Positions 1 to 30,040 of a stretch of DNA of 64,000 nt are shown piece after piece; the first letter of the stretch is position 1, and each line of letters starts with the position of its first letter. The stretch lies in contig NC_043000.1 in NCBI RefSeq assembly GCF_006345805.1, forward strand, positions 66,526,001 to 66,590,000. Reading direction: 5' to 3'. The notes beneath the pieces are model-generated. The model worked only from the letters and a program-made list of their open reading frames with translations. It searched no databases and was not told the DNA's origin. Origin of the DNA: Octopus sinensis. Its lineage: Eukaryota. Position numbers and translations under genes: made by a program.

Positions 1-2522
1 TTCTTAGGTCCAACTTTTCTCTCAAGGTATTTACAGTCTATCGAGTAAGCACACTGACATTACACATCCATCGGATCATACTGGCTTCATTTCTTGCAAG
101 CTTATGCATGTCCTCAGCAGTCATGGCCCATGTTTCACTGCCATGGAGCATGACTGTTCATACACATGCATCATACAGTCTACCTTTTACTCTGAGTGAG
201 AGACCCTTTGTCACCAGCAGAGGTAAGAGCTCTCTAAACTTTGCCCAGGCTATTCTTATTCTAGCAGCTACACTTTCAGCGCACCCTCCCCCACTACTGA
301 CTTGGTTGCCTAGGTAACAGAAGCTATTAACTACTTCTAGTTTTTCTCCCTGGAAGGTGGCAGAAGTTGTTCTCTACATATTTTCAGTGTTTATTGCTCC
401 TGAGAATCTGCCACATACAAAAACTATCTTCCCAGTTAGCCTTCCTTTGATATTGCTGCACCTCTTATGTGTCCATAGCTTACACTGGGTACATGTTATA
501 GAGTTTCTACCTACACTTTTTCTACAGATTGAGCAGGGCCATCTACCTGACGGGATTTATGGTTTTCCTGCCTTCCTACTTATTAGGACTTTGGTTTTAG
601 CTAGGTTGACTCTAAGGCTCCTCGATTCTAAACCCTCCTTCCACACCTGGAACTTCTCCTCCAGTTCTGATAGTGACTCAGCAATTAGAACAAGGTCGTC
701 AGCATAGAGGAGCTCCCAGGGGCAACCTGTCTTGAATTCCTCCGTAATTGCCTGGAGGACTATGATAAATAGGAGGGGGCTAAGTACTGAACCCTGGTGG
801 ACCCCAACCTCTACTTTGAATTCTTCTGTGTACATGTTGCCAACCCTAACCTTACTTACGGCATCCCTGTACATGGCTTGCACAGCCCTCACCAGCCATT
901 CATCTATCCCTAGTTTCCTCATTGACCACCAGATAAGGGATCTGGGGACCCTGTCAGAGGCTTTCTCTATATCAACAAAAGCCAGGTACAGAGGTCTATC
1001 TTTGGCCAGGTATTTCTCCTGCAGCTGTCTTACCAGAAATATAGCATCAGCGGAGCTTTTCCCTGGCACGAACCCAAACTGCATCTCATCTAAACTGACT
1101 CTCTCCCTAATTATTTGGGCTATGACTCTCTCCGTGAAACTTCATTACCTGATCTAACAACTTGATACCTCTGTAATTATTTGTATCTAAAACGTCACCT
1201 TTTCCTTTGTAGCAGTTGACTACAGTGCTGCTACACCAGTCATTGGGTATGACTCCTTCGTGTATCACCTGGTTAACTATACGGGTGACTAGACTATAGC
1301 CAACACTGTCAGATATTTTGAGCATCTCTGCAGTGATTCCTGATGGGCCGGGGGCTTTCCCTGTCTTCATACTCTTAATTGCTTTATCTACCAAGGTACT
1401 GTCAACTCGGACAGCAGGTCCCTCTGATGGGTCGACATTTGGCAGACTCTCTTTCTCCCATTCATTTACTTTATTTGGTAACCTTTCATAGTGGCGTCTC
1501 CAAACCTCTCTCTTTGCAGCCTCGTCTAGTGCAAGTGAACCATCATCCATGCAAACACATTTCTCTCCTACAACATCACAATTCTCTCTCACACACTGTC
1601 TTGCAAAACAAAATACCTCAAGTCTTTGGTCCTCATGGCACAGAACAATGGCAAATTTTTTCTTATCTGCTTCCTCTCTGGGTAAATAAACCTGCCTCCT
1701 AGCTTCCCTTCCGGCAGTCTCATACAATTCCCTGCTACCACCATTCTTCCAGTCCTTCCAAGCCTGTTTCTTTTCTCTAATAGCCCTGTCAACAACATTG
1801 TTCCACCACCATGTTATTTTGGGTCGAGAGGGGACTTTGCACCATCCACAGATCTGGTCAGTTGTCCCTAGCAGATTGTTCTGTAGAAACCTCCAGTTGT
1901 CTTCTACATTGTGTGAAGCTATATCCCCTGCTATTTCGTCAAAGACTTCAAGTAATACGTCTCTAAATCTCTGTCCATTGGCAGGATCTTTAAGCTTCCA
2001 GACCCTTCTCCTTCATACTGGTCGTCTTCTGGGCATCCACTTAGCCCTGATCCTGAAGTCACTAACTACCAGTCCATGTTGTGGGGTATATTCTTTGCCT
2101 GGGAAGGTTTTGGCATTTATAAGCAGTCATCTTTCCCTTTTTCTGGTAAGGATATAGTCAATTTGGCTAGTGTGTCTGCCAGAACAGTAGGTGACTAGGT
2201 GACTGGCAGGTTTTCTGAAGTTAGTATTGCAAACCATAAGATCATTTACATTGCAGAACTCCAGCAGCTTGGTTCCCTCCTCATTGCAGGAGCCCAAACC
2301 ATAGCCACCATGGAAGGCCCCGGCATGTTGTCCAACACGTCCATTGAAGTCACCATCCACAGAGAGAATTACTAACTGTAATTCATCAATGCAGTAGTCT
2401 GCAAAAGGGTGTGATAGAATTGGTCTTTCTGTTCATTGGGTAGCCCCGGCTGAGGGGCATAGGCCGAGATAATGGTTGCTAACCCATGATGAAGCACTAA
2501 TCTAATCTTAAGTATTCTGTTG
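1..2522 (-). mobile_element. RTE-clade LINE, decayed endonuclease + reverse transcriptase, continues off the left edge
   Basis: ORF 557..1084 has QFGFVPGKS, GVHQGSVLSPLLF and LYADDL (RT motifs). ORF 1107..1727 has GKAPGPSGI and NYRGIKLL. ORF 2127..2360 has GDFNG and SQIDYIL (APE endonuclease). IISAYAPQ is readable near 2460-2490. Frameshifts separate the pieces. Confidence 0.93.
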
Positions 2523-9754: not shown

Positions 9755-9884
9755 CCAGTTTTCAGGAAATTCATCAGTATTTTCATATGAAAATTCTATA
9801 GGTTCTTTCCCAATTTTCTCCAATTCCTCGTCTGGTGGATCATCACTGCTGTCACTCTCAGTTGATGATAGAGAGTAAAATCTC
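9755..9884 (-). CDS. Internal coding exon of an unidentified gene (RFYSLSSTESDSSDDPPDEELEKIGKEPIEFSYENTDEFPENW)
   Basis: Acceptor ttttctaatag, donor TGG|gtaagt, only one open frame; its phase-2 start matches the phase-2 end of exon 16896-16936. Confidence 0.75.
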
Positions 9885-10174
9885 CTATTAGAAAACATTA
9901 AATCTCTGATAACAATAACAGCTGCATTACATAGAAGCATAAAATAGTATTATCAATTTCTATATATGAAATGTAATATACACTAAAAGGGAACTGACTT
10001 GATACTAAGCACCAGCAGTGCCAAAGAGAAAGAGAGGGAAAGGATATATATATAGTGTATAAATATATATATCGTATCATACAGGCAAGAAAGAAATATT
10101 TTCAAATGCAGTAAAGCCGTGACAACAGCAGAAAGAATGGGTATTTTACCCTTATATGATGTAAAATATTGTTA

Positions 10175-10248
10175 GCAGACAGCTATGGGACTTGAACCCA
10201 CACTGCCCAGATACCGGCTGAGTACTCTACCTATTAAGCTACAAAATG
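10175..10248 (-). mobile_element. tRNA-like SINE head (not a functional tRNA)
   Basis: A-box tagcttaataggtagag, anticodon-like arm ctcag/ctggg and T-arm gtggg-ttcaagt-cccat are present, but the acceptor stem does not pair. Confidence 0.6.
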
Positions 10249-10327
10249 TTACTATTTTGTCTGTATGATACAATACACATTCAATGCTTTCGAAAACAGG
10301 AAAAAAAAGTTTGTTTACATATGTTGT

Positions 10328-10365
<38 letters not shown>

Positions 10366-10569
10366 ATATTGAATCGTTAATCCTTACACATTTTTTGTCT
10401 CTTTCAGCGTTTTTTTTCTTCTTAATCCTTTCTGTTGAAGAGCATAGGCTTGAAACAAGAAAGACTTTTCTATTCTTCCTGAGCATTAAACTAATACACC
10501 TGCTTGTTGTTCCCTCACCTGTCTTTGTCTTTCATTTTCTGTAAATTTGAATACTATATATATATATGT

Positions 10570-10880
10570 GGAGGCACAATGGCCCAGTGGTTAGGGCAGC
10601 AAACTTGCAGTCATAGGATCGTGGTTTTGATTCCCAGACCTGGCATTGTGAGTGTTTATTGAGCGAAAACATTTAGAGCTCCACGAGGCTCCGGCAGGGG
10701 ATGGTGGCGATCCCTGCTGTACTCTTTCGCCACAACTTTCTCAAACTCTTTCTTCTGTTGGCCTGCTTGCTTAGCCAGCAGGGTGGCATCATTTGAAGGC
10801 TAAAGCAATGCGAAGTGCATTGTGACCAGCGATGTGTAGCAACATCTGATAGCCTGGTTGGTCACAGTGATCACGGTAAT
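10570..10880 (+). mobile_element. tRNA-derived SINE family B
   Basis: GGAGGCACAATGGCCCAGTGGTTAGGGC head with a B-box-like segment; reverse-complement copy at 49003-49311. Confidence 0.88.
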
Positions 10881-11068
10881 ATATATATATACTTAATCAT
10901 ATTCAAAGGGAAATGGAAATTAATTAAAATTTTCATTTCCAGTGGCCTAACGTGTAAAAATTTAGTCCAAAGGACTGTGGCTGTGCTGTAGATTTTGAAA
11001 AAATTAGGATGTATAAACAAGAGGCACATAGTTTGTTCACCTTGTGTTTATATATTTAACCCAAGGTG

Positions 11069-11149
11069 TTCCTGCTGAGGACGATTTCACCTAGTGAATA
11101 TATGTGATTTACTTGCTAAACTAAAATCAGAAACCAATTGGTCCAGGAA
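11069..11149 (+). ncRNA. Type I hammerhead ribozyme, near-canonical, with a palindromic minimal stem III
   Basis: Stem I TTCCTG (11069-74)/CAGGAA (11144-49); core CTGAGGA 11075-81; stem II CGATTT/AAATCA; GAAA 11130-33; stem III ACC-AATT-GGT; GUC cleavage triplet ending at C11143. Confidence 0.75.
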
Positions 11150-11354
11150 ACTAGATGGTAAAATGTTTTTATTTTTTCATTTCGTTCTTGTCAAATTTTA
11201 TCCCTAATTTTTGGTTATGGAACCTAGCTGTTCTTTCTAGCGTGTTGAATCCCATGAGTGGATTCCTCATGTGTTTAAATGTACACTGTATTATATATAT
11301 ATATAATAATTTCTTAAGTAATGAGAAGGTGGATTTCGTATTAATCTTTATTTT

Positions 11355-11459
11355 ATAAAATGGTCATTTTGACCCATCCTGCTACTGTCCCTTATGGGTG
11401 AGACTCCCTTCAACATGTGTTGCATCAATTTTGCAGTTTGGGTCTCATCAGGTACATCC
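11355..11459 (-). ncRNA. Decayed hammerhead-like motif on the opposite strand
   Basis: Minus strand: CTGATGA, stem II GACCC...GGGTC, AAAA in place of GAAA, stem III ATG/CAT, AUU triplet, weak stem I. Confidence 0.45.
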
Positions 11460-11612
11460 ATACATGAAGTTGTGTCTTGCTAAAGATCCTGAGTTTTGGC
11501 TGTCATGTTGTTATATGCCTGTCTAGTTAGTGAATGAAATATTGCTACAGTTTTCAATTACTATTATCTATCTTCAATAAGGGTTGCAAATAGTTGTAAA
11601 TGTAGATAAATG

Positions 11613-14100
11613 ACACTGGTCAACAAAAAATTTGTCCCAAGAAAAAGAATACCTGTATCTTATATGTTTTTGAATGCAGAATTCAAAAATAATGTCAAAT
11701 TATCTGTATCACCTACAGTTTCTCTGTTCCCCGATATCCCTTTCAGTTGAGCTGTTGAAATGTGAAGCTAATGGTTTAAGAAATACTCCTTATTTAAATG
11801 CTTATGAATAGAATTAACCTAATGAAATCATAAATCTAGCTATCTGAGTCAACGAGTCACCAAAGCTTGGCAACACTGAGTCAATGAGTCACCAATACTT
11901 TGTCAGTGTTGTGCTTGAAGTGTAGGTGTGCAATTGTGTATTAAGTTCACATATTCCATTCACCTTCATAATGCCAAGAAACTGTATAAACATTGCAGAC
12001 AACTTTTGCTATATTTACGGTGACTTAACATTCAAGTCACAAAGGTGGTGTTTCACGACATTAATTAAAAAGTGCTATGAGCATTATTTTGACTGCAAAG
12101 TGGGTAATCAGGATAAAAGCTAAGCTCCTCATGTGTGTTGGGTAACCTGTGTCAGGCTTCTCACTGCATGGGCCAAAGGTTCATGCTATATGCCTTTTGC
12201 CATCCCTATGATTTGGAGAGAGCTCAATGATCAGATTGCTACCTCTGATGAATATACGAGGTATAACATCAAAATTCGAGCATACTGTAAAACATCCTAA
12301 TTTACAATCTGCCATGAGACCAGTACTTCACAGTCAACACTTAACTGTACCTGACCCCCACCCAAAAAAAAATGACACTGAGTGACAATGAGTCAAATGA
12401 TGAAGTGTGAAGGAAGAAACAGAAGACATGGACTTTAAGCCAAACAGTTCTTCAAGTGAACCACATTTGTTGAGTCAGGGAGATCTGAATGATCTTGTAC
12501 ATGATTTAAACTTATCGAAAAAGCAAGCTGAACTTCTTTGTTCCAGGTTAAAGGGCTGGAATCTTCTCCAGGAGACCAAAGTTAGTTTTTATCATGCTAT
12601 GCATTGTGATTTTTCAAAATTTTCTCACTTGAGGATGGTATGGTGTTTTGTAATAATGTATATCCTGTTATGGAGGAACTTAACCACAAATATAACACAA
12701 ATGAGTGGCGTTTGTTTATTGACTCCTCAAAAGTAAGCTGGAAAGCAGTTTTACTCCACAATGGAAATAAGTTTCCTTCTGTTCCTCTGGACCACGCAGC
12801 TAACATGAAAGAAACATATGAGAGCATGAAGCTTCTGTTGCAAACAATTAAGTATGAGGAACATAAATGGAATATTTGTTGGTGACCTAAAGGTTGTGAA
12901 ACTTTTACTTGGAATGCAGATGGGTTACACCAAGTTTTGTTGCTTTCTCTGTGAGTGGGACAGTTGGGATGAGAAAAATTATGAAAAGAATGTATGGCCA
13001 AAATGATCATTTGATCCTCTAACAAAAGAATGTCATCAATCCTCCCCCTGTTGATTCTGAGAAAATTTATCTGCTTCCTTTGAATATTAAGCTAGGGTCA
13101 ATGAAGAATTTTGTCAAAAGTATGGATAGAACTGGCAAGGGATTCACGTATTTTAAAACTAAATTTCCAAGAGTAAGTGACACAAAAATTAAGGAAGGTA
13201 TTTTTGTTGGGCCACAGATTAGAGAGCCGATGGGAGACCAAAAGTTTGAAGAGCTCAATGATGATGAAAAAGCTGTGTAGCTGTCATTTAACCTTTTTGT
13301 TACCATATTTCTGTTGAGATGCTCTGCGTTTCTTTCAATTATTTTAAATATGACAGAGAATTTAGTAAAATAACTTAGTTATCATTCAGCTAGTGTCAGG
13401 AACATAAACTGTGACTAAGATTTGGTGGAGGATTTTAATTCAAAACTTATGAAAACAAGACATTTGTACTACAGAGTCAGAGCTGGATTCAGCTGGGTTG
13501 GTAATGAAAGGGTTAAGAAAGTTTGCAGAGAGGTTTTGGGGAATCACAGAGCTGTGAACTATTCTGACATTGTGAAAGAGCCACTCACATCATAAAAAAG
13601 CTTGGGATGCAATATGAACCTAAAGATCCACTTCTTGAACTCTCACTTGGACTTTTTTCCTACAAATCTTGGGGCTGTCAGTGATGAGTACAGCAAAACA
13701 TTCTGAAGATGAAAATCTGGTACCAAGGAAAGTGGAGCTCTTCTATGTTGGCTGATTGTTGTTGGTCACTAAAAAGGGATGTTCCAGAAGCTAAATAGTT
13801 GAAAATCATACGCCTCTACATTTTAAAGGTAAGTTTTCTTGTAATATCAGCCCGATTTTTGAATTTGTGAAATACAATTGTTTAACAATTTACATATGCT
13901 ATCACAGAAAAACATGACTTACAGAAAAGATCTGAAAACACACTTAAATTCTGCAGATAAAATGCTATTTAGTTCATCTACTTTTGTTTGTGGGACACAC
14001 ATTTTCATTAATACTGTACACTAATTATAATTGTCATTCTTATTTCTGCATTAATATAGTACATTTATTGTATAATTTAATTACTCTGTCACATAAAAAC
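11613..14100 (+). mobile_element. Chapaev (CMC superfamily, Chapaev3-like) DNA transposon, decayed
   Basis: N-terminal Cys/His domain MPRNCINIADNFCYIYG..KVGNQDKS*APHVC..MPFAIPMIWRE; core EWRLFIDSSKVSWKAVLLHNGNKFPS, GYTKFCCFLCEWDS, IKLGSMKNFVK, KIKEGIFVGPQIR; CAC start at 11613. Family name from recalled motifs; right end uncertain. Confidence 0.78.
13292..13512. mobile_element. piggyBac-type MITE inserted in the Chapaev transposase
   Basis: TTAA at 13288-91 and 13513-16; TIR cctttttgttacca / tggtaatgaaaggg; removal restores SFKKVCREVLGNHRAVNY. Confidence 0.85.
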
Positions 14101-15279
14101 CATGCCTGATAGAAAAATTCTAAAAATAGATTCGAAATCTGCATTATAACTACTATAAACTTCACTTTCTTACATTTTTATATATACATATTTTTTTTGA
14201 ATATTGGAATTTACGTTTAAAAAAATTCGAAGTGAAATTTGTGAGAATTCAATTTTATATAATTGTAATCTCCAATTATTAAAAACTGTAAATCTCCGCC
14301 CCCTAAAAAGAAAAAAAAATACGGGAAAAGTTTCAGGATGAAAAAGTTAGGGAAAGTAAGGAAGCCTCAAAATTTGAACTTTTGAGGTTTTTGGAAGAAT
14401 CAAATTTTTTTTTTGTCAGAATCACAACCTGTAATGATTAAAACATATATATCCAAAGAAATTATTTGTTTAGGAAGTTCTATTCTATAAGATTACCGAT
14501 TTTCAACACTGATGCTTTTGGTGTTTCAGTATTTTATATCCATGTAACTTTCTGGGCATTTTATCATTTTAATTAATGATAGTTGGTGTGATTGTGTGAA
14601 TACCTATGAATTCTTAAAGATTCTTTATTTTTCCTAAGCATCGACATGTTCTACAGGTGTTAAACAATTTCAGAGAGAGGAATTGCATGGCTTAGTGACT
14701 AGGATATTTGATTCCTAGTGGTGCATTGTGTCATCCAGCATGACACATTATTTCTTGTTGCTCCAGTCCACCCAGCTGACAAAAATGAATTGTACCTGTA
14801 ATTCAAAAGGCCAGCCATATCACATTCTGTGTCATGCTGAATTTCCCTGAGACCTACATTAAGGGTATGCATGTCTGTGGAGCGCTCAGCCACTTGCATG
14901 TTAATTTCATGAACAGGCTGTTCAGTTGATCGGCTCATCTGGAATATTTGACATTGCAACCAACAGAGAACCAGGATACAATTTCAATCAGTTGTAGGTA
15001 CTGGAAGAGTTCCCCACCCTTGCTATATAATGTATCTTGGATGTGAAAGAAACTGTAAAAGACTAGGAAACAAGCCAAAGAGGAATTCTCAATGAACAGT
15101 AGGGAAACTTTCAAATCTCAGCAGTAGGGACCAAGTCCACAAGTATCCGTGAAAACACATTCAAAGTTGATTGTTAACCTATGATTTTGTTTCCTTTCAC
15201 CCAGTGGTTTGGTCCCTGTTCAGCTCTGATAAGAGGAATACAAGCTGCGATCACCTTGTTCATTTTTTTTTTTTTATCA

Positions 15280-15648
15280 AAATCGAAATGGATCAACATC
15301 AATGGAAATTGTAGCTGTGATACCAGTGCCAGTGGCACGTAAGAGAACCATCCGAATGTGGCCGTTGCCAGCGCTGCCCCGACTGGCCTCTGTGCAGTGG
15401 CACGTAAAAAGCACCATCCGATCGTGGCCGTTTGCCAGCCTTGCCTTGCACCTGTGCCGGTGGCATATAAAAAGCACCCACTACACTCACGGAGTGGTTG
15501 GCGTTAGGAAGGGCATCCAGCCATAGAAACACTGCCAGATCAGACTGGGCCTGGTGCAGCCTTCTGGCTTCCCAGACCCCAGTTGAACCATCCAACCCAT
15601 GCTAGCATGGAAAGCGGACGTTAAACGATGATGATGATGATGATGATG
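15280..15648 (+). mobile_element. RTE 3' tail fragment ending in (GAT)n
   Basis: Ends ggacgttaaacgatgatgatg...; internal gtaaaaagcacc units; matches the tails of ORF-bearing copies. Confidence 0.9.
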
Positions 15649-15890
15649 TGTCTAGAAGTATCTAGAAAAATCGTTCCTAAACTCGGAAATAGTTTTGAAA
15701 ATTATTGTACAACCTGGCATTCTTACATGTGTGCATCCCGAATTTGTTACCTCATAACTTCCAGAAAAATGGATGTTTTTAAATAAAACTTTCTACAAAT
15801 ACGCTTCAGATGGTGTAGATTTCAATTATATCAGAATATGTTGTGAAAAAATGTTTTCAAGGGTGGGATGAAAAATAACACGAGATGCAT

Positions 15891-16287
15891 TTCTTTCTTT
15901 CTTTTACTTGTTTCAGTCATTTGACTGTGGCCATGCTGGAGCACCGCCTTTATTCGAGCAAATTGACCCCAGGACTTATTCTTTGTAAGCCTAGTACTTA
16001 TTCTATCAGTCTCTTTTACAGAACCGCTAAGTTACGGGGACGTAAACACACCAGCATCAGTTGTCAAGCAACGTTGGGGGGACAATAACAGACACACAAA
16101 AATACACACGCACACACACATATACAACGGGCTTCTTTTAGCTTCCGTCTACCAAATCCACTCACAAGGCTTTGGTCGGCCCGAGGCTATAGTAGAAGAC
16201 ACTTGCCCAAGGTGCCAAGCAGTGGGACTGAACCCGGAACCATGTGGATCATAAGCAAGCTACTTACCACACAGCCACTCCTATGCC
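15891..16287 (-). mobile_element. tRNA-derived SINE family A, full length
   Basis: Reverse complement of 43524-43937, with an internal (CA)n tract. Confidence 0.92.
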
Positions 16288-16895
16288 TTTACTCACAACT
16301 TTCAGAAAATGGGTAATTTTTTTCTGAAATATTCTATGAATACCTTCTAGAGTGTGTAGATTATGATTATATTGAAATTTAATATGGAAAAAAAAAAAAA
16401 ATGGCAGACTCATACACATATATAATGACATATGTCACATCAATCTACAAAATAAAACTTGGAATTTTGAAAAAAATTGTAATGTGTGTAAGTATGTATG
16501 TGAGCGTGCTGACTATTTTTCTTCTCACATTAAATTCCGATATAACTGTAATTTACACTCTCTGAGAGAAGTATTGGTAGAAAATTTCATTAAAAAATAG
16601 CCATTTTTCTCAAAGTTATGAGGAAACAAAGCCAACTTGTGAGAATTTCCTGAAACTCATCTTCCTACCCACAGAAATATTTTTTCACAACAAATTCCAG
16701 ATCTAGTCAGTTTGGCTGCCAGCATCAATTCTGTTCAAATTGATTTCATATTCAGTGTAATGATATACTTTTATAGGCTAATGAATGACGTGAAAATCAT
16801 TTTTGCTATAAATCAATAAATAAAGAGTTATTAGCAATTAAAGTTTGAAAATGTTGGTAATTTTAACCAATTGTAAGCCACAGACACATTCATAC

Positions 16896-16936
16896 CTGTT
16901 TCCATAGTAACAAGTGGAACATGAGAACTCTTTTGT
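16896..16936 (-). CDS. 41-nt internal exon of the unidentified gene (TKEFSCSTCYYGN + 2 nt)
   Basis: Strong acceptor gtgctttctcgcag, donor CAG|gtatga; phase 0 to 2 joins exons 18720-18788 and 9755-9884 in frame. Confidence 0.75.
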
Positions 16937-17084
16937 CTGCGAGAAAGCACGAGTTGACATATATATTGAAACTACTTGTTTTACCTATCTGTTGACAGTT
17001 GAGCATGTGAATTTTAGAACTGGTCAATAAAATATTTGTTTTTTAATAATATTGAATTTGTAACATATTGTTCATTACATTTGG

Positions 17085-17371
17085 GATCTAAGTTGGTTTG
17101 GCTGCCAGCATTTCAAAAATTAAAGTTTACAGAAAATTTTAAAATTTGGCACAATAATATACTTTTTCAAGCTGAATTGTTGGAGTTATCTCACTTTTTC
17201 CAGAAAAATGTTTTCAAAAAGTTATAGAGGTTTAAAGTTTCACCCAGTCAAGAAACAGGATTTGGAAGCTGTCATTTTGTGCATGACCACACATTTTTAA
17301 AATTGTGCCAAATTTAAAAATTTTCGGTAAACTTTAATATTTGAAATGCTGGCAACCAAACAAACTAGATC
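17085..17371. repeat. Inverted repeat, arms about 70 bp (17085-17154 and 17303-17371)
   Basis: gccagcatttcaaaaattaaagtttac...tttggcacaa versus ttgtgccaaa...gtaaactttaatatttgaaatgctggc. Confidence 0.85.
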
Positions 17372-17480
17372 TCAAATTCCAATATAATCAGAATTTACAC
17401 CACCTGAAGCGTATTTGCAGAAAATCTCATTTAAAAATATCCATTTTTCTGAAAGTTATAAGGGAACAAAATATGGTAAA

Positions 17481-17742
17481 TTTTTTGAGCAACACTCACA
17501 CAATTTTCACTAAAAAAAAAAAATCGGATTTTTTGCATGGAATCAAGTACCTTGACCTCCTAATATGCTGCAAATCCTTTATTTTGGTTCAGAAAAGGAT
17601 GAGGGGGAGGGGGATCCCCCCTTATTTCTGAACAAAAATAAGGGATTTACAGTATATTAGGGGGTCATGGTACTTTATTCCACGCAAAAAAATCTGAGTT
17701 TTTTTTTTCTTAGTGAAAATCGTGCGGGTGTTACTCAAAAAA
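17481..17742. repeat. Palindromic MITE-like hairpin, arms about 120 bp
   Basis: ttttttgagcaacac...ggttcagaaa versus tttctgaac...gtgttactcaaaaaa, with a short G-rich centre. Confidence 0.88.
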
Positions 17743-18028
17743 TATACTCAAAGTATGAGGGGGAGGCACACATCTGTAAGAGCGCTGCAGAACCTATACC
17801 TATATCTTACCTGCCACCCAATAGTAACCCATTAATTACTGGGTGAGTAAGATTATTAAAGGTTATTAAATGGTTCCTTAATCACCCAGTGATTAGGAAT
17901 TATTGAGGGCACGTTGCCTAGTGGTTGGGTGATGTCTTCAGGACAGCAGATCGTGGTTTTGATTCCCCCCAAAACGCTTTATTTCATGTACCTTGGTTTC
18001 TTTGGAACCCACTTGCAAGACACTTATC

Positions 18029-18430
18029 GGATATTTTCGGTTTGAACGGCAGTTTTTGCTAGCGGTGTCATATGAAATTGTCACCCATAATTATGACCCT
18101 AGTATCGATCTATTGCATTTCATTCTGTTTTAGGGTTAGGGGTGGGGGGAAGGGTATCTTTTTTTTCTTCAGAAATGTAAATAAACCCAATCTGTTTCTT
18201 AAACGAGGGACATATTCATACGGCACAGAATGTTTTTCACCTCAATAGACGTCATTGATTGGTTGAAATTGAAGAAAAAACAACAAATATCTTACAAACT
18301 ATAGAATTTTCTCAATAAAGCCAAGAGAAAAAGATGTTTTATAAACACATTCTACCAGCATACGAAGTTTAAAAGTGTTTAGTTACGTGGAAAATATTTT
18401 TAAAAACTGCCGGTCAAACCGAAAAGATCC
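18029..18430. mobile_element. MITE with GG termini and an 8-bp TSD (Merlin-like)
   Basis: TIR GGATATTTTCGGTTTGAACGGCAGTTTT / AAAACTGCCGGTCAAACCGAAAAGATCC; flanks CACTTATC and TACTTATC (7/8). Confidence 0.8.
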
Positions 18431-18719
18431 TACTTATCTACAATATGTTTTCTTTTTAAAAATCAAAAAGGTGTGATTTGAAAGAAGTTTGGTTGCTATT
18501 CTTAGCACTTCGAGCGGCTATGTAGAAGCTTCCTTCGTTTACTCGGTGGTAAAGACGTTCTAAATATTGGTTAGTTTGACTGTAATTTAACCAGCTTGTC
18601 ATGGTGAATGTACAAAATTATAGGCAGATCGCCAAATTATATAATACACTAATCTAATTATATACAAAATCTAATTGTAGACAATATTTTATTAAATAAA
18701 GCAACGGAATACAATTTAC

Positions 18720-18788
18720 TTCCTGGTTCACTCTCTCTCGCATTATGAATTGTAAGTTCTGAAGTTTCAGTTTAATAAATTCAGTAGC
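18720..18788 (-). CDS. 69-nt exon of the unidentified gene (ATEFIKLKLQNLQFIMRERVNQE)
   Basis: Acceptor ttcatttag, donor GAA|gtaaat, only one open frame, phase 0/0. Confidence 0.68.
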
Positions 18789-19055
18789 CTAAATGAACTT
18801 ATCTTCGAATCTAAGCTTATATTAAGGAATAGCTATAAATGTTAATTACTAACAGAGTAAGAAATTTTCTTTTTTGGTCGGCTTCACTTATCAACGGCTA
18901 TGCTTTTTATCGACCTCGAAAGAACGAAAGTCACAAAAAAGAATGTCTGTAATATAAATTCTTTCTTAAAAGAGCTACAATCGAATATGCATCATATATT
19001 ACAAAATATATATTGGGTACTACAATAGACAAGTACCTATATATTGTATACTTAC

Positions 19056-19111
19056 TTAGTCGGGTTCTTATAAAATTCGTCCATCGGGTTGACCATATCG
19101 AGCTCGTCCAT
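19056..19111 (-). CDS. Candidate first exon (MDELDMVNPMDEFYKNPT + AA)
   Basis: ATG at 19111 and consensus donor gtaagt at 19055, but it ends in phase 2, which conflicts with the phase-0 exon at 18788. Confidence 0.4.
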
Positions 19112-19347
19112 GATTGAAGAAAGTAGGGAACTTAAACAATATCTAAGTTTACAAATATCTTATTGACCTAAGGACACATAACTCTTATTGTTTGTGTCGT
19201 AGCACAACAAAAATGCATGCGTTGGTAATTTTATAAATCTTGAGCTGATTGCATAAATGTTGAAAGTGAAATAACTTCGTTAATAATCTTAAATGACAAA
19301 ATATTTTAAAGGATGAAAAATAAATTATGTTAATGTTGACATTATCA

Positions 19348-19857
19348 GGCGTAGGAGTCACTGTGTGGTAAGTAGCTTGCTTACCAACCACATGGTTCCG
19401 GGTTCAGTCCCTATGCGTGGCACCTTGGGTAAGTGTCTCCTACTATAGCCTTGTGAGTGGATTTGGTAGACGGAAATTGAAAGGTGCCTGTCGTATATAT
19501 CTTATATTAAACTTTTAATACTTTTTGATAGTTATATAATTAAAAAATTAATAATTAACTAAATAAAATAAAATAAAACAATAATAATAAATATATATAT
19601 ATATACATATATATTTAAAATTTATAAGTTTAAATTATTTAAATAATTTTTTAAATTTTAACTTTAATTTAAATATTTTAATTTGGAATTTTATATTTTT
19701 TATATTTTATACTTTTTTTAAAATTAATTTTATTTCTATGTATTTTGGCTTATGATTTTCACTGTTTGATTTGCCTAATAGTGGTTTTATCTCTAATTTA
19801 ATATAATATAATATTATATTATATATATATATATATATAATATATATATATATATAT

Positions 19858-19905
<48 letters not shown>

Positions 19906-20122
19906 GTATATGTTTGTGTGTCTGTGTTGTCATCCCAACATCGCTTGACAACCGATATTGGTGTGTTTACGTCCCCGTAACTTAGCGGTTCGGAAAAAGA
20001 GACCGACAGAATAAGTACTAGGCTTACAAAGAATAAGTCCTGGGGTCGATTTGCTCGAGTAAAGGCGGTGCTCCAGCATGGCCACAGTCAAATGACTGAA
20101 ACAGGTAAAAGAGTAAACGAGA
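19348..20122 (+). mobile_element. SINE family A with an expanded internal AT-rich tract (about 19495-19910)
   Basis: Head ggcgtaggagtcactgtgtggtaagtagc and tail ctccagcatggccacagtcaaatgactgaaac match 43524-43937. Confidence 0.9.
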
Positions 20123-20250
20123 GTTATGACCCGGAAACGAAATCGAAAAATAAAAAAAAAAATAGTGCAACGGGTGTAAACAAAAGATGTAGAAAACGAA
20201 TATGAAAACACAAGTGTGCGGAAAGCAACGGGGTGGGGTGTTTAAGGAAA

Positions 20251-20763
20251 TCTATATATATAAAACTGTAGTTGTGTGAGTGTCTGTCCCCTTCGATTTA
20301 GATTCCTAACTACTCCCACATTTTGCGGTGCAGTTTAACCAAATTCGGGTATCTTATAGTCGTGATTCATATCGAGCCCGTCTGAGTATTAGCGCGCGTC
20401 TACGATGAGTCTACGATTTTAAAAATAATTTAACATCATTTTTTATTCCATTTTAATGCGTAATTTTTCGTGTGTCGATGGTGGCGGAGTTGGCGTCCAT
20501 GGTCACACCTGCACCTGTTTGCTTCTCCCCCTTCTTCCCTCCCTCGTGAAGCTGTGGGGAAGGGAGTGTAAGGAAATCAACGTCGTAAAGCGTTGTCAAG
20601 GAGACCAGCGTTCTTTTAGAACAATGACTTCATGGCTTGAAGACACCAAAACAGAAATGGCTAAGAAAGCCCGAATTGGCATCTATAAGGGAAGTAACTC
20701 TCTAAAAATGCTTATATAGTTATTTCCCTTACAAACCCGAGCAACGCCGGGCGATACTGCTAG
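20251..20763 (+). mobile_element. Non-autonomous Helitron
   Basis: Inserted between A20250 and T20764; 5' TC; 3' hairpin CCCGAGCAACGCCGGG followed by CTAG; no TSD. Confidence 0.88.
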
Positions 20764-21732
20764 TGTTATATATCTTTCAAACGGCATACATTACGATTAT
20801 AACGAAAATTGTGGGTAAAATCTTTTCCGAAGGAGTGGAGAGAGGACTTCGGAAAATTCACAAGATCCGATTTTTTCCCTCGTAACTTTAAGGAAAATGG
20901 ATATCTTTTAATGAAATTGAATATAAATACTTTTCAAACGACATGCATTATGGATAACTAATGTGCTATACGCCCCTTATTTTTGTTCGGAAAAGGTGGT
21001 GGTGGTGGTGGGGGAAGGGCAATAAATGCGTTTTTTGAAGGTGAGATGCGAAACTGCATTAGCCAGTTTTCTGTACCCATATTTTAAGATAACATTTTGC
21101 AGAAATACGTTTTCTAGAGTGTGGATTACATTAGACTGACAATTCGAACAAGTTTGAAAAGAATAATAAGTGAAAATGCTGAAATTATAAAAAATAGTGG
21201 TAACGAAGTCTGGACAGGAGAGAGAAAGAATGATACAAAATCCTTACAAAAACCACGTTAGTGTTTGTGTGTGTGAAACAAGTAAAATTATAATATTAAA
21301 ACAAAATATCTTTTACATACCTCTTAAAAATCACTGGATATATTAATCCCAGATTGCAGATTGTGGCATATTAGGTCACGGTAATTCATTTATAGAAAAA
21401 AGAAAAAAACATTTTCCAATAATTCCGGTTTCTCCCACCCCTTTTTTCCGAACAAAAATAAGGAGTTTGCGGCACATTAGGCATCCGTTATGCATGCCAT
21501 TTGAAAGGTATATATATACAATTTCATTAAAAGATAGGAAAGACTTCCGCCCGCCACCCCCATTTTCTCCCAAATTTGTTTATTTTTCTAATTTTTTTTT
21601 TTAGCCAAAAACCCCCGTTTTCGGAACGGAGGTTCCGAAAACTTGCCAAAAATCGGCATTGTTAAAATTTTGCCCTCTTTCCGCCCCGCAAAGTCTTTAA
21701 TTTTGACTTGTTTCCCCAACACTAATTCTAAC

Positions 21733-21790
21733 ACCAACCCTAACCCTAAAACCCTAACCCCAACCCTAACCCTAAAACCCTAACCGTAAC
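21733..21790. repeat. Interstitial telomere-like (CCCTAA/CCCTAAAA)n tract
   Basis: aaccctaaccctaaaaccctaaccccaaccctaaccctaaaaccctaacc. Confidence 0.9.
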
Positions 21791-23784
21791 TACAGAAATG
21801 TTTTGAAATTTTTGTCCGAATCATAATGTCCGTATTTCCCCATATATTAAAAAAAAAAAAGAAATCTTTAAAAAACTTTTACAAAAATTTTTGGAAATTT
21901 TTTTCAGAATCATTATCTCCGTATTTTTCCGCACATTTTGAAAAAAAACAAAATTTTAGAAAAAAGTAAAAAAAAGAAAATGAAGGAAAGTGGGGGTGGT
22001 AATTTAAAAATGCGATTTTTGCCAGCAGATTCGTATTCCCCGTAACCAAAACAAAAAAAAGGTGGGGGTTGAGTCGAAAAAAATTAAAAAAGAAGGGTGT
22101 GTTTTTTTTGGTGGGGAGGGGGGCCGAAATCTTGCCAAAATGGGGAAAGACTTCCGTCCCAAAAATATTCATTTTCCTTAAAGTTACGAGGGAAAAAAAT
22201 CGGATCTTGTGAATTTTCCGAAGTCCCTTCCCCACCCCTTCGGAAAAGATTTTACCTACAAATTTCGTTATAATCTTAATGTATGATGTTTGAAAGGTAT
22301 TTATATAAAATTTCATTTCAAGAAAACCCCATTTTCCTAAATGTTATGAGGGAAAAACTCGGATCTTGTGAATTTTCCGAAGTCCTCTCCCCGCCCTTGC
22401 TTTCCGCGCAATTTTGTTTTCATATTCGTTTTCTTCATATTTTTTTTACACCCGTTGCATTACTTTTGTTTCGATATCGTTTCCAGGTAATAACGTCAAT
22501 CTCAACCATAAATTAAGATTAATTAAAAATTAAAATAAATCAAAAATGCTAAGATTAAGTTTGTATGACATTTCAAAACTGGGCGTGGTCTTCTGATAAA
22601 TAATACCAGCACTCCATAACATGTTAACGATATTTTTTACCTCCCAACTTAGGGTTAATGTTTCAGTCTTTGCAACACTTATTCTCATTCCTGTCTTGCA
22701 GCACTCAACAGCAAACCCATTTAGGTCACGCTAGGGAATCCGGCCGGAAAGTATAATGAAGGCTGCTTGTGATAGGACCTGTGGAGGAGGTGACTAAGGA
22801 CTCAACCCTCACGACCCTTCAATGAGTAGTGGGTGGAAAAGATGGACAGAAGGGGAGAATGCAGATTTCCTCATAACGCCCCATAATATATATTTTTGAA
22901 CACTTTTTCCATCTTTTTTCCGCGCAATATTCTTGCTATATTCACATACTTTACGTCGCAAGTGTTACTGTCAGAACACGAAGAACCAGGAACAGATACT
23001 CCAAGACATTTGTTTCTCGGCCAGCAATCCAATGACCGAAAGAGAGAGCTAAATTGCTTGTGTTTTTATGTTTTCTAATTAAAGTAGGTCAACTGAGAAC
23101 AATAGGATTTCTCTAGAATTATCCACCTTGACCCTTGGATACCATGAAAAGGTCCAAGAGGCCAACATAGTCTCATTTATCTCTTGGTGCAGAGAGAAAA
23201 CAAAAGACCGGAAATTTGTTTGACAATTAATGAAAATGTGGATTCGGTTTCGAATCCTCTTAGCTAGACTGTAGCATGCTGCTATATATCCATTGTCTCA
23301 GTTGATCACGCTTGGGAAACCAGCCGAACAGTCCAATGATGATTGATTTTGATAGGAACCTATAGATGTGGCGTCTGAAGACTCTATTCCCAAGACCCTC
23401 TCAGGAATAGCGGGCAGAGAAGATAGATGGATAGACAGATTCAAAAATTCTGCTTTGTCACATCATGTCACGCTAGCTCGTCCTAAGAATTGTTTTAATA
23501 GTTTACATGTTTCTTGAATATCCAATCTCTTATACAATTATTTCACATGTAGGAATTCAGTTAGTGAAACAACTGAATGATTATTAATGAGATTGACGGA
23601 GAATCCCACATCATACTTCGGTATTGATTATCTGATACTAAAATTTGAAAGATAAATGTCTTTTTGCAAGATTTCATAGTTATCGTTGCAAAGGCTAAAA
23701 GACGACGTATGAAGATCTGGTTAAATAGATTCACAAAATCGGCCCCCTTTAATTTCGCTCAGATTGTTTTCAATTTTGGTGTAT

Positions 23785-24464
23785 CGATGCAACTCTTTTG
23801 AGCTACAGATTTAAAAAATAATTTTTTGTAACTAAATACTTTCAAACTTCGGACACTGGTAGAATGTGTCATATAAAACATGTTTTACTCTTAGCATTTT
23901 GATAAAAACTTATATTTACGAAGTTATTTCTCCTTAAAGTTCTAGTATTTCGGTAATTTCAACCAATCAATGACGTGCATTCAGCTGAATAAAATTACTG
24001 CTGTTGTTTGTCAACAAGAACTTCCGGCGGGGTATATTTCGTTTGTCACTGTTATTTATGACAACCCTAAAACCCTAACCTTAACACACTAACCCTAAAA
24101 CCTTAACCCTAACCCTGAAACCCTAATCCTAACCCTAAAACCCTAACCCTAAAACCTTAAAACCAGTACAAACGCACGAACGATGTCATAAATAACAGTG
24201 ACAAACGAAAAATACACCACCGATAGTTGTTGTTGACAAACAACGGCAGTAATTTTATTCAGCTGGATACACGTCATTGATTGGTTGAAATTACCGAAAT
24301 ACGAAAACTTTAAGGTGAAATAACTTCGTAAATATAAGTTTTTCTCAAAAATGCTACGAGTAAAAGATGTTTTATATGATACATTCTACCAGTGTCCGAA
24401 GTTTGAAAGTGTTTAGTTACAAAAAATTATTTTTTTAAATCTATAGGTCAAAAGGTAAAGATCC
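23785..24464. mobile_element. Fold-back element with about 280-bp inverted arms around a telomere-like core (24063-24163)
   Basis: Arms are reverse complements along their length; the right end AAAGATCC and internal blocks are shared with the 18029-18430 MITE. Confidence 0.88.
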
Positions 24465-24469
24465 CCGCA

Positions 24470-24638
24470 TTTAGTCGAACAAATCGACCCTAGGACTTAT
24501 TCTTTGTAAGCCTAGAACTTGTTCTGTGTCGGACTCTTTTGCCGAACCGTTAAGTTATGGGGACATAAACACACCAGCATCGGTTATCAAGCAACGATGT
24601 GGGGAACAAATAGAGACGTACATACATACATACATACA

Positions 24639-24687
<49 letters not shown>

Positions 24688-24690
24688 TGA
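24470..24690 (-). mobile_element. SINE family A 3' part plus (TACA)n/(TA)n
   Basis: ggacttattctttgtaagcctag matches the family tail. Confidence 0.8.
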
Positions 24691-25319
24691 TAAAAATGGT
24701 AAGACAACAAAAGAATGAAAGGTACCTCGATATTATGTAAATAGAGGAATTTATCTGTAAATTTAATATGTGACAATTATTCGGTAGCTGCGTGCATACG
24801 GGTATATAGACGTGGTTTAACCTTTTTCTATATTGTTACCCTTAGCCCTGTGTTTTCTTGTGTTTGTGCGTATATAGATATGTGTATGAAACTTTTGGTG
24901 CGCGTGTGGATGTGTGGGTTTGTATATATATATACATACAAATATATATCTTTGGCGAATGGTGCGGGTGATGTTGTGTACGTTTCAAGTGAAGGTGGAT
25001 GAGTGTAAACTTTTAGGCGCATGCACATGGGTGTGCGGGGGCGCATGTGTGGGTATGAACATGCGCGCTTACGCGAATACTATGAACTTTTTACCCCCTT
25101 ACTTTTACTCCCTCCCCTCACTTAGCGGACATTCAAATAGCTCTTTTGTCTTAATAACGGTCAATCACACAGTAATTTCCCTTTGTAATGATGATGATGA
25201 TAATAATAATAATCATAATAATAATAATAACGTGTCTCTAATACGATATTCGGCTGCTTTCCAGAACTGGGCTAAGGAAGAACTAGAACACATTGACTGT
25301 TAAACCAGTAAGACAATAG

Positions 25320-26420
25320 TCATGCGTAGGTTGTTATATCTTAGAGATAATGTTGATAGATTATCCTTACCACAGAAGGAGGGAGAGGGTTGATATCAAT
25401 AGAAGACTGTGTAGAGATAGTAGAACGTAATACAGAAGAGTATGTGAGAAGAAACGCAGAAACACTGATTTCAGCTGCCAGAAGAGAGAAGAAAGAAGCT
25501 GCGGAGACTGCAAGGAAAGAAGCAAACAGGAGAGAGAAAAAAAAGAAGAAATCTGGGGAAAAGAAGTGCACGGTCTGCAACGCAGACAAACACAGGATGT
25601 CGCAGCAGATGAGTCTTGGTTATGGCTTAAGACTGGAGAACATTAGAAAGAAACGGAAGAACTTATAATGGCTCTCAATAGGTATCTTACCACACAACTA
25701 TGCTTGCACCATGCTTCCAGAAAAATGGTTGCTTTCTTAATAACATTTTCTTCAAATAACTTTCAGACGGTGCAGATTACGGTAAAGCTGTGTAAAGCGC
25801 TAAGTGTAGAGAATGTAACGAGAAAGAGGAATTCGTTATGCACATAAGTTCCTGTAGTCTTTTGGCACATAAGGAGTATAGTCGCGATTATGTGGCCAAG
25901 GTATTCCACCGGAACATATTACAGCAAAAGGGATTTGAAGTTGGCAGAAAATGGCACCAACATCAACTAGAAAGTATAGTAGAGAACGACCAGTTTAAGG
26001 TCTTTTGGGACTTTACTGTACAGGCTAACCACGAACATCAAGCAAGGCGAACTGGCATTATATTTCTGGAGAAGAGTAAAAAAGAGTGCATCATCATAGT
26101 TGTGGCTATATCTACAGATATGAATGTAGCTGTCAAAGAACAGGACAAAATAGGAAAATGCTTGGATTTGGTTACGGTAATGCGCAGACTGTGGAGGATT
26201 TCTACAAAAGTAATCCCACAAGTAATATGTGTCCTAGGTACCGTCACCAACAGACCTCATAGTTTCCTTATTGAGATTGGTGTAACTAGGCGAGTTGCAT
26301 TAATACAGGAATCTACTATGTTGGGAACAACAAGGATTGTAAGCAAGGTCCCCGATATCTAAGGAAACTGGTTGTGATTCGGTATCAAGGACATTAGTAC
26401 TGAATGTAACATTCGTGCAT
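25320..26420 (+). mobile_element. R4/Dong-type (restriction-like endonuclease) non-LTR retrotransposon, 3' portion
   Basis: DRLSLPQK-GGRGLISIEDCVE; ORF 25838..26362 has HISSCSLLAHKEY..VFWDFTV..ARRTGII..KEQDKIGKCLDL..VIPQVICVLGTV, i.e. a degenerate CCHC plus RLE domain. Confidence 0.8.
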
Positions 26421-26519
26421 AATGTTGAATGATTATAATTCTTTCTCTATTGACCACAAAGGCCACCACAAAACAAAAGGACGCTACAACACAACAGACT
26501 CATTAGCATGTGTAAATAG

Positions 26520-28520: not shown

Positions 28521-28559
28521 CCAATAGAATCTCTTCTGAGTAGATTGTATAGAAATTCA

Positions 28560-29110
28560 CCTGAAAAAGTGGTACCGAAGGAGTACAAGGAATACAGAAA
28601 ATACCAAGACGTTGTACAGAGGATAGACTGGGAGATGTGAAGGAGGTACGGGTAAGAGTGGACCAACAAGTGGTACGAATACCAACTCTTGCCAGTCGCA
28701 GTCAATGATCACATGAAACTCATGTGGGATATGACAATCTACAGTTAAGAAACTAAAAATCTTCGACCAGATATCATTCTTCTCCGGAAAGAAACCAAAT
28801 AACGCATCTTTATTGACTGAGAGGTACCAGCAGATCAAAAGAATGTGAAGACAGTGCACGAGAGAGCCGCAAGGTATCAAGACCTGGTATTTAAAGTTGA
28901 GCATATTCATAGAGCCACAAAAAGTCAAGATGTTATCCTTCGTGATTTCGGAATCACTTAAAAAGAACACAAAAACCAAATATAAGAAGTTGGAACTATC
29001 AAACATCATTGGCAGTACGCAGCTATACTTAGAACAGCGCATATATTGAGGAAAGTGTCGCATCTCGATGCCGTAGGAAGGAACTGAGACATGACTTAGA
29101 TAGCATAGAA
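28560..29110 (+). mobile_element. Second RLE-type LINE 3' remnant
   Basis: KLMWDMTI..LRPDIILLRKETK*RIFID and a terminal ILRKV. Confidence 0.6.
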
Positions 29111-29459
29111 CATCAAAACTGGAGAGATTACTCTGCTGATTCCTAAGCATCGAAAGTGCTCCTTCGTTTTTTTCCCTCCTACTTTCAGATTTGAATTTAA
29201 GAGAGCTCTTCACACCTGCTCTGTCGTCCGGCATGCTAGAAATAGCAGTCTCATTTCCCACAGGACATCCTGCCGTCTTAAAAATAAAAATCCAGAAGAA
29301 AGAACACATCAAATAGCGTAGTCCAGGGTATAGTGTGTCTTGATAAAAGACGTGATGGTCATGATTGGGTTTGCTTATTCAGGAACTGGGTAAAACTAGT
29401 TCAGTGCCTTCACCCCATCTTTTGTTTCTTCATAACTTTCTGAGAGTGCAGACTGTGAT

Positions 29460-30040
29460 TATGTTGGGGGAAGGGGATTAGTCAATTACGTCGACTCCAG
29501 TGCTCAACTGGTACTTGTTTTATCGACGCCAAAAGGTTGCAAGGCAAAGTTGACCTCGGCAAAATTTGAACTCAGAACGGAAAGATGGACGAAATGCATT
29601 TTGTCTGATGTAATAACAACATCAATGATATTAATAACCCTTTCTTATTTTGGCACAAGGCCAGCAGTTGTGAGGGTGGGGAAAGTCGATTACATCGATC
29701 CCAGTGCTCAACTGGTACTTATTTTATCGACTCAGAAAGGGATGAAAGATAAAGTCGACCTCGGCGGAACAACAGCAGTAGCAGCAACAACAATAACAAT
29801 TATGAAAGTTTGGTGGCAGGAGTCTAGATGATTACGTCGACCAGTACTTATTTTATCGATCTTGAAAGAATGAAAGGCAGAACAACAATAATAATGGTTT
29901 CAAATTTTGGCACAAGGCCAGTAATTTCCGGGAAGTGGGTAAGTCGATTACAGTGACACCAGTAATCAACTAGTACTTATTTTATCGACCCCGATAGGAT
30001 GAAAGGCAAAGTCGACCTTGGCAGAATAATAATAATAATT
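29460..30040 (-). repeat. Head-to-tail chain of four SINE-C-derived modules separated by (AAT/AAC)n
   Basis: Recurring gtcgattac..cagtgctcaactggtacttattttatcgac..gaaaggcaaagtcgacct at about 29480, 29685, 29830 and 29945. Confidence 0.8.

Follow-up and report, generated by a model that had tools for sequence, protein, structure and literature searches.

The minus strand of a 64,000-nt stretch of Octopus sinensis chromosome CM016862.1 (66526001-66590000; the window, whose own numbering is used below) very probably carries, from about 29.3 kb to past its left edge, the orthologue of EEF1AKMT1 (N6AMT2; yeast Efm5). This assignment is drawn from sequence comparison, in which we observed homology, a shared exon structure, conserved synteny and two false exons that are not conserved. 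The gene is an ordinary one of a known family that apparently has no protein model in O. sinensis, where it may lack an annotation or be listed as a non-coding gene or a pseudogene. EEF1AKMT1 is a seven-beta-strand, SAM-dependent methyltransferase that trimethylates Lys79 of eEF1A in yeast and human, an activity known for these two enzymes only (PMC10238732, which reviews the function of the family). A sequence-only reading of the same DNA had proposed a minus-strand gene of small exons (69, 41 and 130 nt), oriented divergently from taxilin and belonging to an unrecognisable, perhaps lineage-restricted family. Its strand, small exons and orientation are borne out, as the exons map in order and the two genes stand head-to-head in both octopuses examined; its view of the family is not, since the gene is annotated in O. 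bimaculoides as an EEF1AKMT1/N6AMT2 (PF10237) member.

The gene model in the window

Comparison was made with the three N6amt2-like isoforms of O. bimaculoides (P0003-P0005; isoforms X1-X3 are XP_014771717/18/20, and P0003 is XP_014771718.1) and with the genomic locus of that species, labelled L002. tblastn of the three isoforms against the window gave minus-strand matches at 29263-29216, 19093-19055, 9886-9755 and 7648-7556, in collinear order, from which the exons in Table 1 were defined.

Table 1. Features of the EEF1AKMT1 locus in the window (a slash marks an exon boundary)
Feature	Position	Strand	Description
Intergenic region, exon A (minus) to taxilin start codon (plus)	29264-31432	.	~2.2 kb
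Exon A, alternative 5' exon	~29263-29216	minus	From tblastn and alignment; in O. bimaculoides its counterpart opens isoform X1
Exon B, start-codon exon	19111-19056	minus	ATG 19111-19109; donor TAA/gtaagt, phase 2
Intron B-C	19055-9885	minus	9171 nt
Exon 1 of the sequence-only reading, intronic	18788-18720	minus	69 nt; tttag/GCT...GAA/gtaaat; in-frame stop in O. bimaculoides
Exon 2 ('CxxC') of the sequence-only reading, intronic	16936-16896	minus	41 nt; tcgcag/ACA...CAG/gtatga; donor GC in O. bimaculoides
Exon C, exon 3 of the sequence-only reading	9884-9755	minus	130 nt; taatag/GAG...TGG/gtaagt; phase 2 in, 0 out
Exon D	7648-7554	minus	95 nt; phase 0 in, 2 out; PF10237 starts here
O. bimaculoides counterparts of the exons left of the window	L002 21929-22220, 23480-23626		

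Exon B encodes MDELDMVNPMDEFYKNPT plus AA, with a 5' UTR portion that may reach ~19130. It aligns with the O. bimaculoides exon at L002 10528-10589, and its tblastn match to P0003-P0005 reads VNPMDEFYKNPTK against VNPLDEFYTNPIK. Exon C encodes (K)RFYSLSSTESDSSDDPPDEELEKIGKEPIEFSYENTDEFPENW and was matched at 84% identity (E = 1e-20); its sites score 5.0 (acceptor) and 8.9 (donor) with position weight matrices, and both are identical in O. bimaculoides. Its signal is far beyond chance. By a codon-usage score trained on taxilin, no minus-strand locus looks more coding-like than exon C, which ranks second overall once taxilin is set aside; the score flagged it correctly, but because it is biased towards acidic sequence it was not relied on. 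Exon D encodes YYSQFWYDEPTIKLITNKIREISKSYKKKEV plus CA (68% identity, E = 7e-9), has an acceptor of 11.5 and a donor, ACA/gtaagt, of 6.4, and falls 5 codons (15 nt) short of its O. bimaculoides counterpart, the frame being preserved. The splice sites of exons B, C and D fit the consensus, and the joined exons give an open frame that aligns end-to-end with the O. bimaculoides isoform P0004, with identity in 70 of 100 alignment columns and at 75% across the 93 residues encoded in the window.

Exon A matches residues 1-16 of P0005 (87.5% identity, E = 7e-5) and has a donor, CAG/gtgtga, scoring 8.8, with a closed frame after splicing. Because its first codon is CTG in O. sinensis and it carries a 5-nt deletion, this exon is probably non-coding there, a 5' UTR with a short uORF.

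Intron B-C contains the two false exons of the sequence-only reading, SINE-like repeats, a tRNA-like element and a TE-like plus-strand ORF, and is collinear with L002 10590-16604 at 81-95% identity. A search of the window for exons E and F found neither; homology to O. bimaculoides ends at 7453, and intron D-E is enlarged by TE insertions that include a LINE reverse transcriptase at 557-1084. What the window covers is the non-catalytic N-terminal part of EEF1AKMT1 alone, made up of a 5' exon by the taxilin promoter, the start-codon exon, an acidic Ser/Asp/Glu-rich linker exon and the SQFWY exon. The exons for the SAM-binding and substrate-binding core would lie left of chromosome position 66526001.

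Identification as EEF1AKMT1

With the spliced 80-aa peptide of the sequence-only reading as query, an exhaustive phmmer search against 1.84e9 representatives returned a single match, XP_014771718.1 of O. bimaculoides, named "EEF1A lysine methyltransferase 1" / N6amt2-like (E = 3.1e-15; 81% identity across query residues 33-80). Human EEF1AKMT1/N6AMT2 is Q8WVE0, and the Pfam family is PF10237 (N6-adenineMlase). P0003 matches this family with 122.8 bits (residues 69-242, profile positions 1-164). For the B+C+D peptide the score is 19.5 bits (E = 8.6e-4), with residues 60-87 aligned to profile positions 1-28; this is below the gathering cut-off of 23.2 bits because the window encodes just 28 of the 166 profile positions. 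The 80-aa peptide itself matches no Pfam family, and the sequence-only reading could not name the protein because nearly all of exon C precedes the Pfam domain. Orthology is indicated by both sequence and gene order, which are shared with an annotated family member. The motif expected at the start of the domain, SQFWY, is present within YYSQFWYDEPT, encoded at 7648-7616, and this block is invariant in an alignment with P0003 and with P0006, an EEF1AKMT1-like protein of a hemichordate. A sequence search of the PDB with P0003 gave no match.

Protein searches of the collection, O. sinensis proteome included, found no O. sinensis member of the EEF1AKMT1 family, although the word-index tool used is fallible. 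A positive control with a taxilin exon showed that the proteomes of both octopuses were present in the collection. The word-index search with the 80-aa peptide found nothing, and this is a proven false negative, because phmmer recovered P0003, which shares exact stretches of 12 and 15 residues with that query. The taxilin control returned only entries from annotated proteomes (ncbi, uniref, nr, eukprot) and none from transcriptome or Logan assemblies, and therefore the protein searches carry no information on expression. We infer that O. sinensis EEF1AKMT1 is expressed and enzymatically active.

Constraint on the octopus gene

Across exons B-D, dN/dS between O. sinensis and O. bimaculoides was ~0.94 (30.3 nonsynonymous against 6.7 synonymous differences), a very imprecise estimate from just 93 codons. 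Purifying selection was undetectable in these N-terminal exons between the two octopus species. Motif Post II, whose exon lies beyond the window, is the Asp-Pro-Pro-Tyr/Phe found where strand beta4 ends (PMC10238732). In O. bimaculoides the orthologue reads DTPH in place of the expected DPP[YF], which is DPPF in P0006; the Asp is retained and the PP-F is lost. Because of this DTPH, the dN/dS near 1 and the absence of an O. sinensis protein model from our searches, octopus EEF1AKMT1 could be under relaxed or altered constraint, and may be a catalytically altered enzyme, a pseudo-enzyme or a gene being lost in octopods. We regard this as unlikely and as a minor lead; if true, eEF1A Lys79 methylation would be dispensable or changed in octopods.

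Some of the same observations would fit a decaying relic in O. sinensis, a pseudogene with recognisable exons that no longer makes a working enzyme. The searched collection yielded no O. sinensis protein, O. sinensis has lost the ATG of exon A and the acceptor that exon B has in O. bimaculoides, the D-E intron is expanded by TEs with homology breaking off at 7453, and the non-canonical Post II is already present in the sister species. However, exons B, C and D are each open with intact consensus splice sites, the only indels in exons B-D relative to O. bimaculoides (6 and 15 nt) are multiples of three and keep the frame, and the SQFWYDEP, IEFSYENTDEFPENW and SSTESDSSDDPP blocks are unchanged between the species. 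The dN/dS value counts for little at 93 codons, and the missing annotation is weak evidence because the search tool demonstrably missed P0003. A pseudogene is quite improbable, and the EEF1AKMT1 orthologue described above is the reading that we prefer.

The 69-nt and 41-nt segments are not exons

The sequence-only reading had joined segments of 69, 41 and 130 nt into a novel, lineage-restricted small protein with a helix-like segment, a CxxC and an acidic tail. The segments are located, flanked and phased (0-0, 0-2, 2-0) as it described, with the translation that it quoted. Its 130-nt exon is real coding sequence, with the frame and the incoming phase 2 correct and the exon conserved in O. bimaculoides, whereas the 69-nt and 41-nt segments are neither exons nor conserved as such. 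The junctions between the three are likewise displaced by 19056/9884, where the true upstream exon is spliced; in O. bimaculoides, exon C follows directly on exon B in every one of the three annotated isoforms.

The 69-nt segment has an in-frame CGA->TGA change in O. bimaculoides, where all three substitutions are nonsynonymous or nonsense. Spliced after exon B it brings in stop codons, and it is missing from each of the three isoforms. Its sites are weak (acceptor -0.9, donor 3.6 bits), with ~950 equally good candidates per strand. The 41-nt segment scores well at both sites (8.3 and 8.5), but its donor is GC rather than GT in O. bimaculoides, both of its substitutions are nonsynonymous (S->L, S->C), splicing it after exon B throws exon C out of frame, and its coding score is the median of open windows. 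Thus all five substitutions in the small segments alter an amino acid or create a stop; the segments are highly identical to O. bimaculoides, but so is the flanking intron. The phmmer alignment to P0003 takes in 5 residues of the 41-nt segment and none of the 69-nt segment.

Open, AG/GT-flanked and phase-compatible segments were also expected by chance. In order-3 Markov sequences of window length, with the candidates' own splice-site scores as thresholds, each strand contained ~10 open exon candidates classed as 'strong', with ~7 two-exon chains of compatible phase and ~320 weak-strong-strong three-exon chains. The proposed chain, taken whole, does not exceed chance expectation, and the two small segments would be fortuitous open stretches inside the 9.2-kb first coding intron. 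A novel protein built from them is therefore very improbable, and the helix-like segment and CxxC are artefacts of non-exonic sequence. A small CxxC or zinc-knuckle protein was also rejected: there is one CxxC with no further ligands, in a non-exonic segment, and no Pfam match. The pattern 'CxxC ... SSTESDSSDD' resembles SREK1IP1/ZCCHC10-type zinc-knuckle proteins, a likeness that we set aside since the segment with the CxxC is not exonic. Repeats found within the window overlap none of the three segments, and an Rfam search of the window gave nothing beyond a tRNA-like SINE head.

A reading of exon C as a fortuitous ORF between genes, as its 72 codons, the 36% GC of the window, the 99 window ORFs of 70 aa or more and the empty word-index search might suggest, is refuted to near certainty by significant homology and by conserved splicing into an annotated methyltransferase of the sister species.

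The taxilin neighbour

Taxilin begins at 31433 on the plus strand. The same head-to-head order is found in O. bimaculoides, with the taxilin ATG at L002 1157 (minus) and exon A at L002 3187, and the whole EEF1AKMT1 locus of that species is collinear with the window at 81-95% nucleotide identity. The intergenic stretch, with about 87-90% identity between the two octopuses, is a putative bidirectional promoter region common to both genes.

Taken as annotation, these results place an apparently missing EEF1AKMT1 model beside taxilin in O. sinensis and give its first three coding exons. The biology is ordinary, that of a conserved housekeeping methyltransferase acting on a translation factor. For method there is a caution: where a genome is rich in A+T and in introns, tiny exons of compatible phase form chains by chance in hundreds per 64 kb, and therefore homology or junction reads are needed before such a chain is believed.

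Comparison with known EEF1AKMT1 genes

The O. sinensis gene shares with that of O. bimaculoides the exon order, the phases, the exon C splice sites and the head-to-head taxilin neighbour. It differs in a larger B-C intron (9.2 kb against 6.0 kb) and a larger D-E intron (> 7.5 kb against 2.9 kb), in an exon D donor shifted by 4 nt, and in that the X1-type N-terminal extension of O. bimaculoides is not conserved. Beyond octopods, the N-terminus resembles EEF1AKMT1/N6AMT2 in its ...EFY..., ...ENW and SQFWY(D/S)(E/Q) motifs, which open the domain, and SQFWYDE is common to the octopus and hemichordate proteins. In contrast, the acidic Ser/Asp/Glu-rich segment that lies between EFY and ENW in octopus is without a counterpart in the hemichordate protein, which carries an unrelated insert at this place.

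A known methyltransferase gene on the minus strand

The minus-strand locus, EEF1AKMT1, is an ordinary member of a known gene family. The sequence-only reading had chained three segments of 69, 41 and 130 nt into an 80-aa peptide and had considered the gene unclassifiable. With this peptide as query, phmmer was run exhaustively against 1.84 billion representatives and returned exactly one protein (P0003, XP_014771718.1; E = 3.1e-15, 81% identity, query 33-80 against residues 22-71), which is named 'EEF1A lysine methyltransferase 1' or 'protein-lysine N-methyltransferase N6amt2-like isoform X2' in O. bimaculoides and shares a cluster with isoforms X1 (P0005) and X3 (P0004). P0003 matches Pfam PF10237 (N6-adenineMlase) with 122.8 bits over residues 69-242, which places the gene in a known family. 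The peptide and P0003 have exact 12- and 15-residue stretches in common. A word-index protein search with the same peptide gave no match; since phmmer recovered P0003, this was a false negative, and word-index negatives with short queries are not to be taken as absence. That the protein could not be named is explained by the 80-aa peptide matching no Pfam family and by the 93-aa peptide encoded in the window reaching only profile positions 1-28 of PF10237 (19.5 bits, E = 8.6e-4).

By tblastn, the N-terminal portions of the three isoforms map collinearly to the minus strand, to 29263-29216, 19093-19055, 9886-9755 and 7648-7556 (exons A to D; see table). The 130-nt segment, called with the correct strand and frame, is exon C, and because its first G finishes the Lys codon begun in exon B, the protein reads ...NPTK-RFYSLSS..., as P0003 reads ...NPIK-RFYTLSS. 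Exon D is 95 nt long and its O. bimaculoides counterpart 110 nt, a difference that preserves the phase. Exon A has CTG in place of the isoform-X1 ATG and, relative to O. bimaculoides, a 5-nt deletion that closes the frame; it is therefore probably a 5' UTR exon in O. sinensis. Judged from this alignment, the X1-type N-terminal extension is not conserved in O. sinensis, and 5' UTR splicing may differ between the two species. The stretch 19140-19112 (minus) has 'caatc' and lacks the 'caag' acceptor of O. bimaculoides exon B. No counterpart of P0003 residues 109-253, the methyltransferase core, was found by tblastn in the window, and homology with the O. bimaculoides locus ends at 7453; the last two exons must thus lie to the left of the window.

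Features on and around the EEF1AKMT1 gene
Feature	Position	Strand	Remarks
Exon A	~29263-29216	-	counterpart of isoform X1 first exon
Exon B	19111 (ATG)-19056	-	encodes MDELDMVNPMDEFYKNPT plus AA; donor TAA/gtaagt
69-nt segment	18788-18720	-	flanks tttag/GCT...GAA/gtaaat
41-nt segment	16936-16896	-	flanks tcgcag/ACA...CAG/gtatga
Exon C (130-nt segment)	9884-9755	-	flanks taatag/GAG...TGG/gtaagt
Exon D	7648-7554	-	encodes YYSQFWYDEPTIKLITNKIREISKSYKKKEV; acceptor 11.5 bits (strong), donor ACA/gtaagt
LINE reverse-transcriptase fragment	557-1084	-	PF00078, 84 bits; EEF1AKMT1 intron D-E
tRNA match	10185-10241	-	Rfam, 33.1 bits, gathering score 29; EEF1AKMT1 intron B-C
Coding-like ORF	12404-12885	+	…EPHLLSQGDLNDLVHDLNLSKKQAELLCSRLKGWNLL…; within EEF1AKMT1 intron
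Tc1/mariner-type DDE_3 transposase fragment	52646-53167	-	PF13358, 58 bits; taxilin intron

Two small segments are not exons

All three segments lie at the positions and in the phases originally described, and none overlaps a repeat detectable within the window. Joining the real exon to the 69- and 41-nt segments was nevertheless mistaken, as both are chance segments. The O. bimaculoides EEF1AKMT1/taxilin locus (L002) aligns collinearly with the window across exons and introns alike (81-95% identity), so that nucleotide conservation alone is uninformative. In the 69-nt segment, an in-frame CGA is TGA in O. bimaculoides and the remaining two substitutions are both nonsynonymous; in the 41-nt segment, O. 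bimaculoides has a GC donor instead of GT, and each of the two substitutions alters the amino acid. Conservation of the exons in related species, which the sequence-only reading had proposed as a check, therefore holds in O. bimaculoides for exon C (acceptor and donor identical) and fails for the other two (stop, GC donor). Neither small segment is used in any of the three annotated O. bimaculoides isoforms. Splicing to the true start exon B brings in stop codons with the 69-nt segment, and with the 41-nt segment it shifts exon C out of frame.

Splice sites were scored with a generic metazoan weight matrix, which gave -2 to 12.7 bits on 13 real taxilin splice sites in the window (7 donors, 6 acceptors). 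The sites had been called good, and this is borne out for the 41-nt (8.3, 8.5) and 130-nt (5.0, 8.9) segments but not for the 69-nt segment (-0.9, 3.6). When the candidates' own site scores serve as cut-offs, 30 open exon candidates on the real minus strand count as 'strong' and 965 as 'weak'. A 64-kb strand of order-3 Markov sequence yields ~10 of the strong class, 7 pairs of strong candidates in compatible phase and ~320 weak-strong-strong chains, and a three-exon chain is thus uninformative in itself. By a taxilin-trained codon-usage score, which favours acidic sequence and was therefore used as a lead only, the 41-nt segment equals the median of open windows, the 69-nt segment falls in the top 2-12% and the 130-nt segment in the top 0.3%, ranking first on the minus strand and second window-wide outside taxilin.

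A head-to-head taxilin neighbour

As a control, the large taxilin exon was used as query and matched an O. sinensis protein (P0001; taxilin, PF09728) together with the corresponding protein of O. bimaculoides; NCBI names the former, at 31433-64000 (plus), 'girdin isoform X1'. The genomic locus of P0001 is 100% identical to window 21433-64000, where the taxilin gene range starts at 31433 on the plus strand, with no further gene calls in 21433-31432. This match identifies the window as CM016862.1:66526001-66590000 in assembly GCA_006345805.1. In L002, taxilin lies on the minus strand (ATG at 1157) and EEF1AKMT1 on the plus strand (exon A at 3187, main CDS 10001-23626), the two head to head, with a 5'-nucleotidase gene downstream. 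The gene had been described as divergent from taxilin, and indeed 2.2 kb separate exon A (29263) from the taxilin ATG (31433) on the opposite strand. From this arrangement, a promoter region shared by the two genes is a reasonable inference.

The large 2.2-kb taxilin exon encodes imperfect ~45-aa repeats rich in acidic residues and Gln. In the intron after it, ~350 nt of the exon (40969-41314) recur with 78% identity at 42595-42909 (plus), and this copy has kept an open frame (EFSSELSEKTVLPLLNEDLSVTDATLHSFSEHDCFQLLPLNQE). The first taxilin intron carries a 26-nt tandem repeat (36494-37403; 35 copies, 92% matches), which accounts for long spurious minus-strand ORFs there. Within the EEF1AKMT1 introns, the tRNA match adjoins a repeat (10330-10489) with >30 copies in the window and is probably the head of a tRNA-derived SINE. 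The putative plus-strand ORF has no Pfam match and may be akin to the transposon-associated ORFs common in animal genomes.

Function and constraint of octopus EEF1AKMT1

eEF1A-KMT1 (N6AMT2; yeast Efm5) belongs to the seven-beta-strand, AdoMet-dependent methyltransferases and was originally named for its 'Post II' motif, DPPY. It adds three methyl groups to Lys79 of eEF1A, a modification whose functional significance is not known (PMC10238732). The window encodes the enzyme's N-terminal extension and the first strand-helix of the domain, with the catalytic residues encoded beyond it; by homology, the octopus protein would act as a methyltransferase.

No O. sinensis protein of the family was returned with the window peptide or P0003 as query, and the gene thus seems to have no protein model in this species, although the word-index false negative with the 80-aa peptide makes this weak evidence. 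Over exons B-D of the two octopus species, the Nei-Gojobori method counts 6.7 synonymous and 30.3 nonsynonymous differences (dN/dS ~0.94, from 93 codons only). Across the same exons, frame and splice sites are kept, both indels have lengths divisible by three (6 and 15 nt), and the species share three identical sequence blocks. The Post II site, in exon E of O. bimaculoides (L002 21930-22220), reads ADTPHF in P0003 against ADPPFL in a hemichordate EEF1AKMT1-like protein (P0006). Together, the apparent lack of an O. sinensis protein, the dN/dS and ADTPHF leave a modest, rather unlikely possibility that in octopus this gene has been altered, is relaxed or is decaying. As a member of the EEF1AKMT1 family, the O. 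bimaculoides protein differs in having lost the canonical Post II DPP[YF], with the Asp kept.
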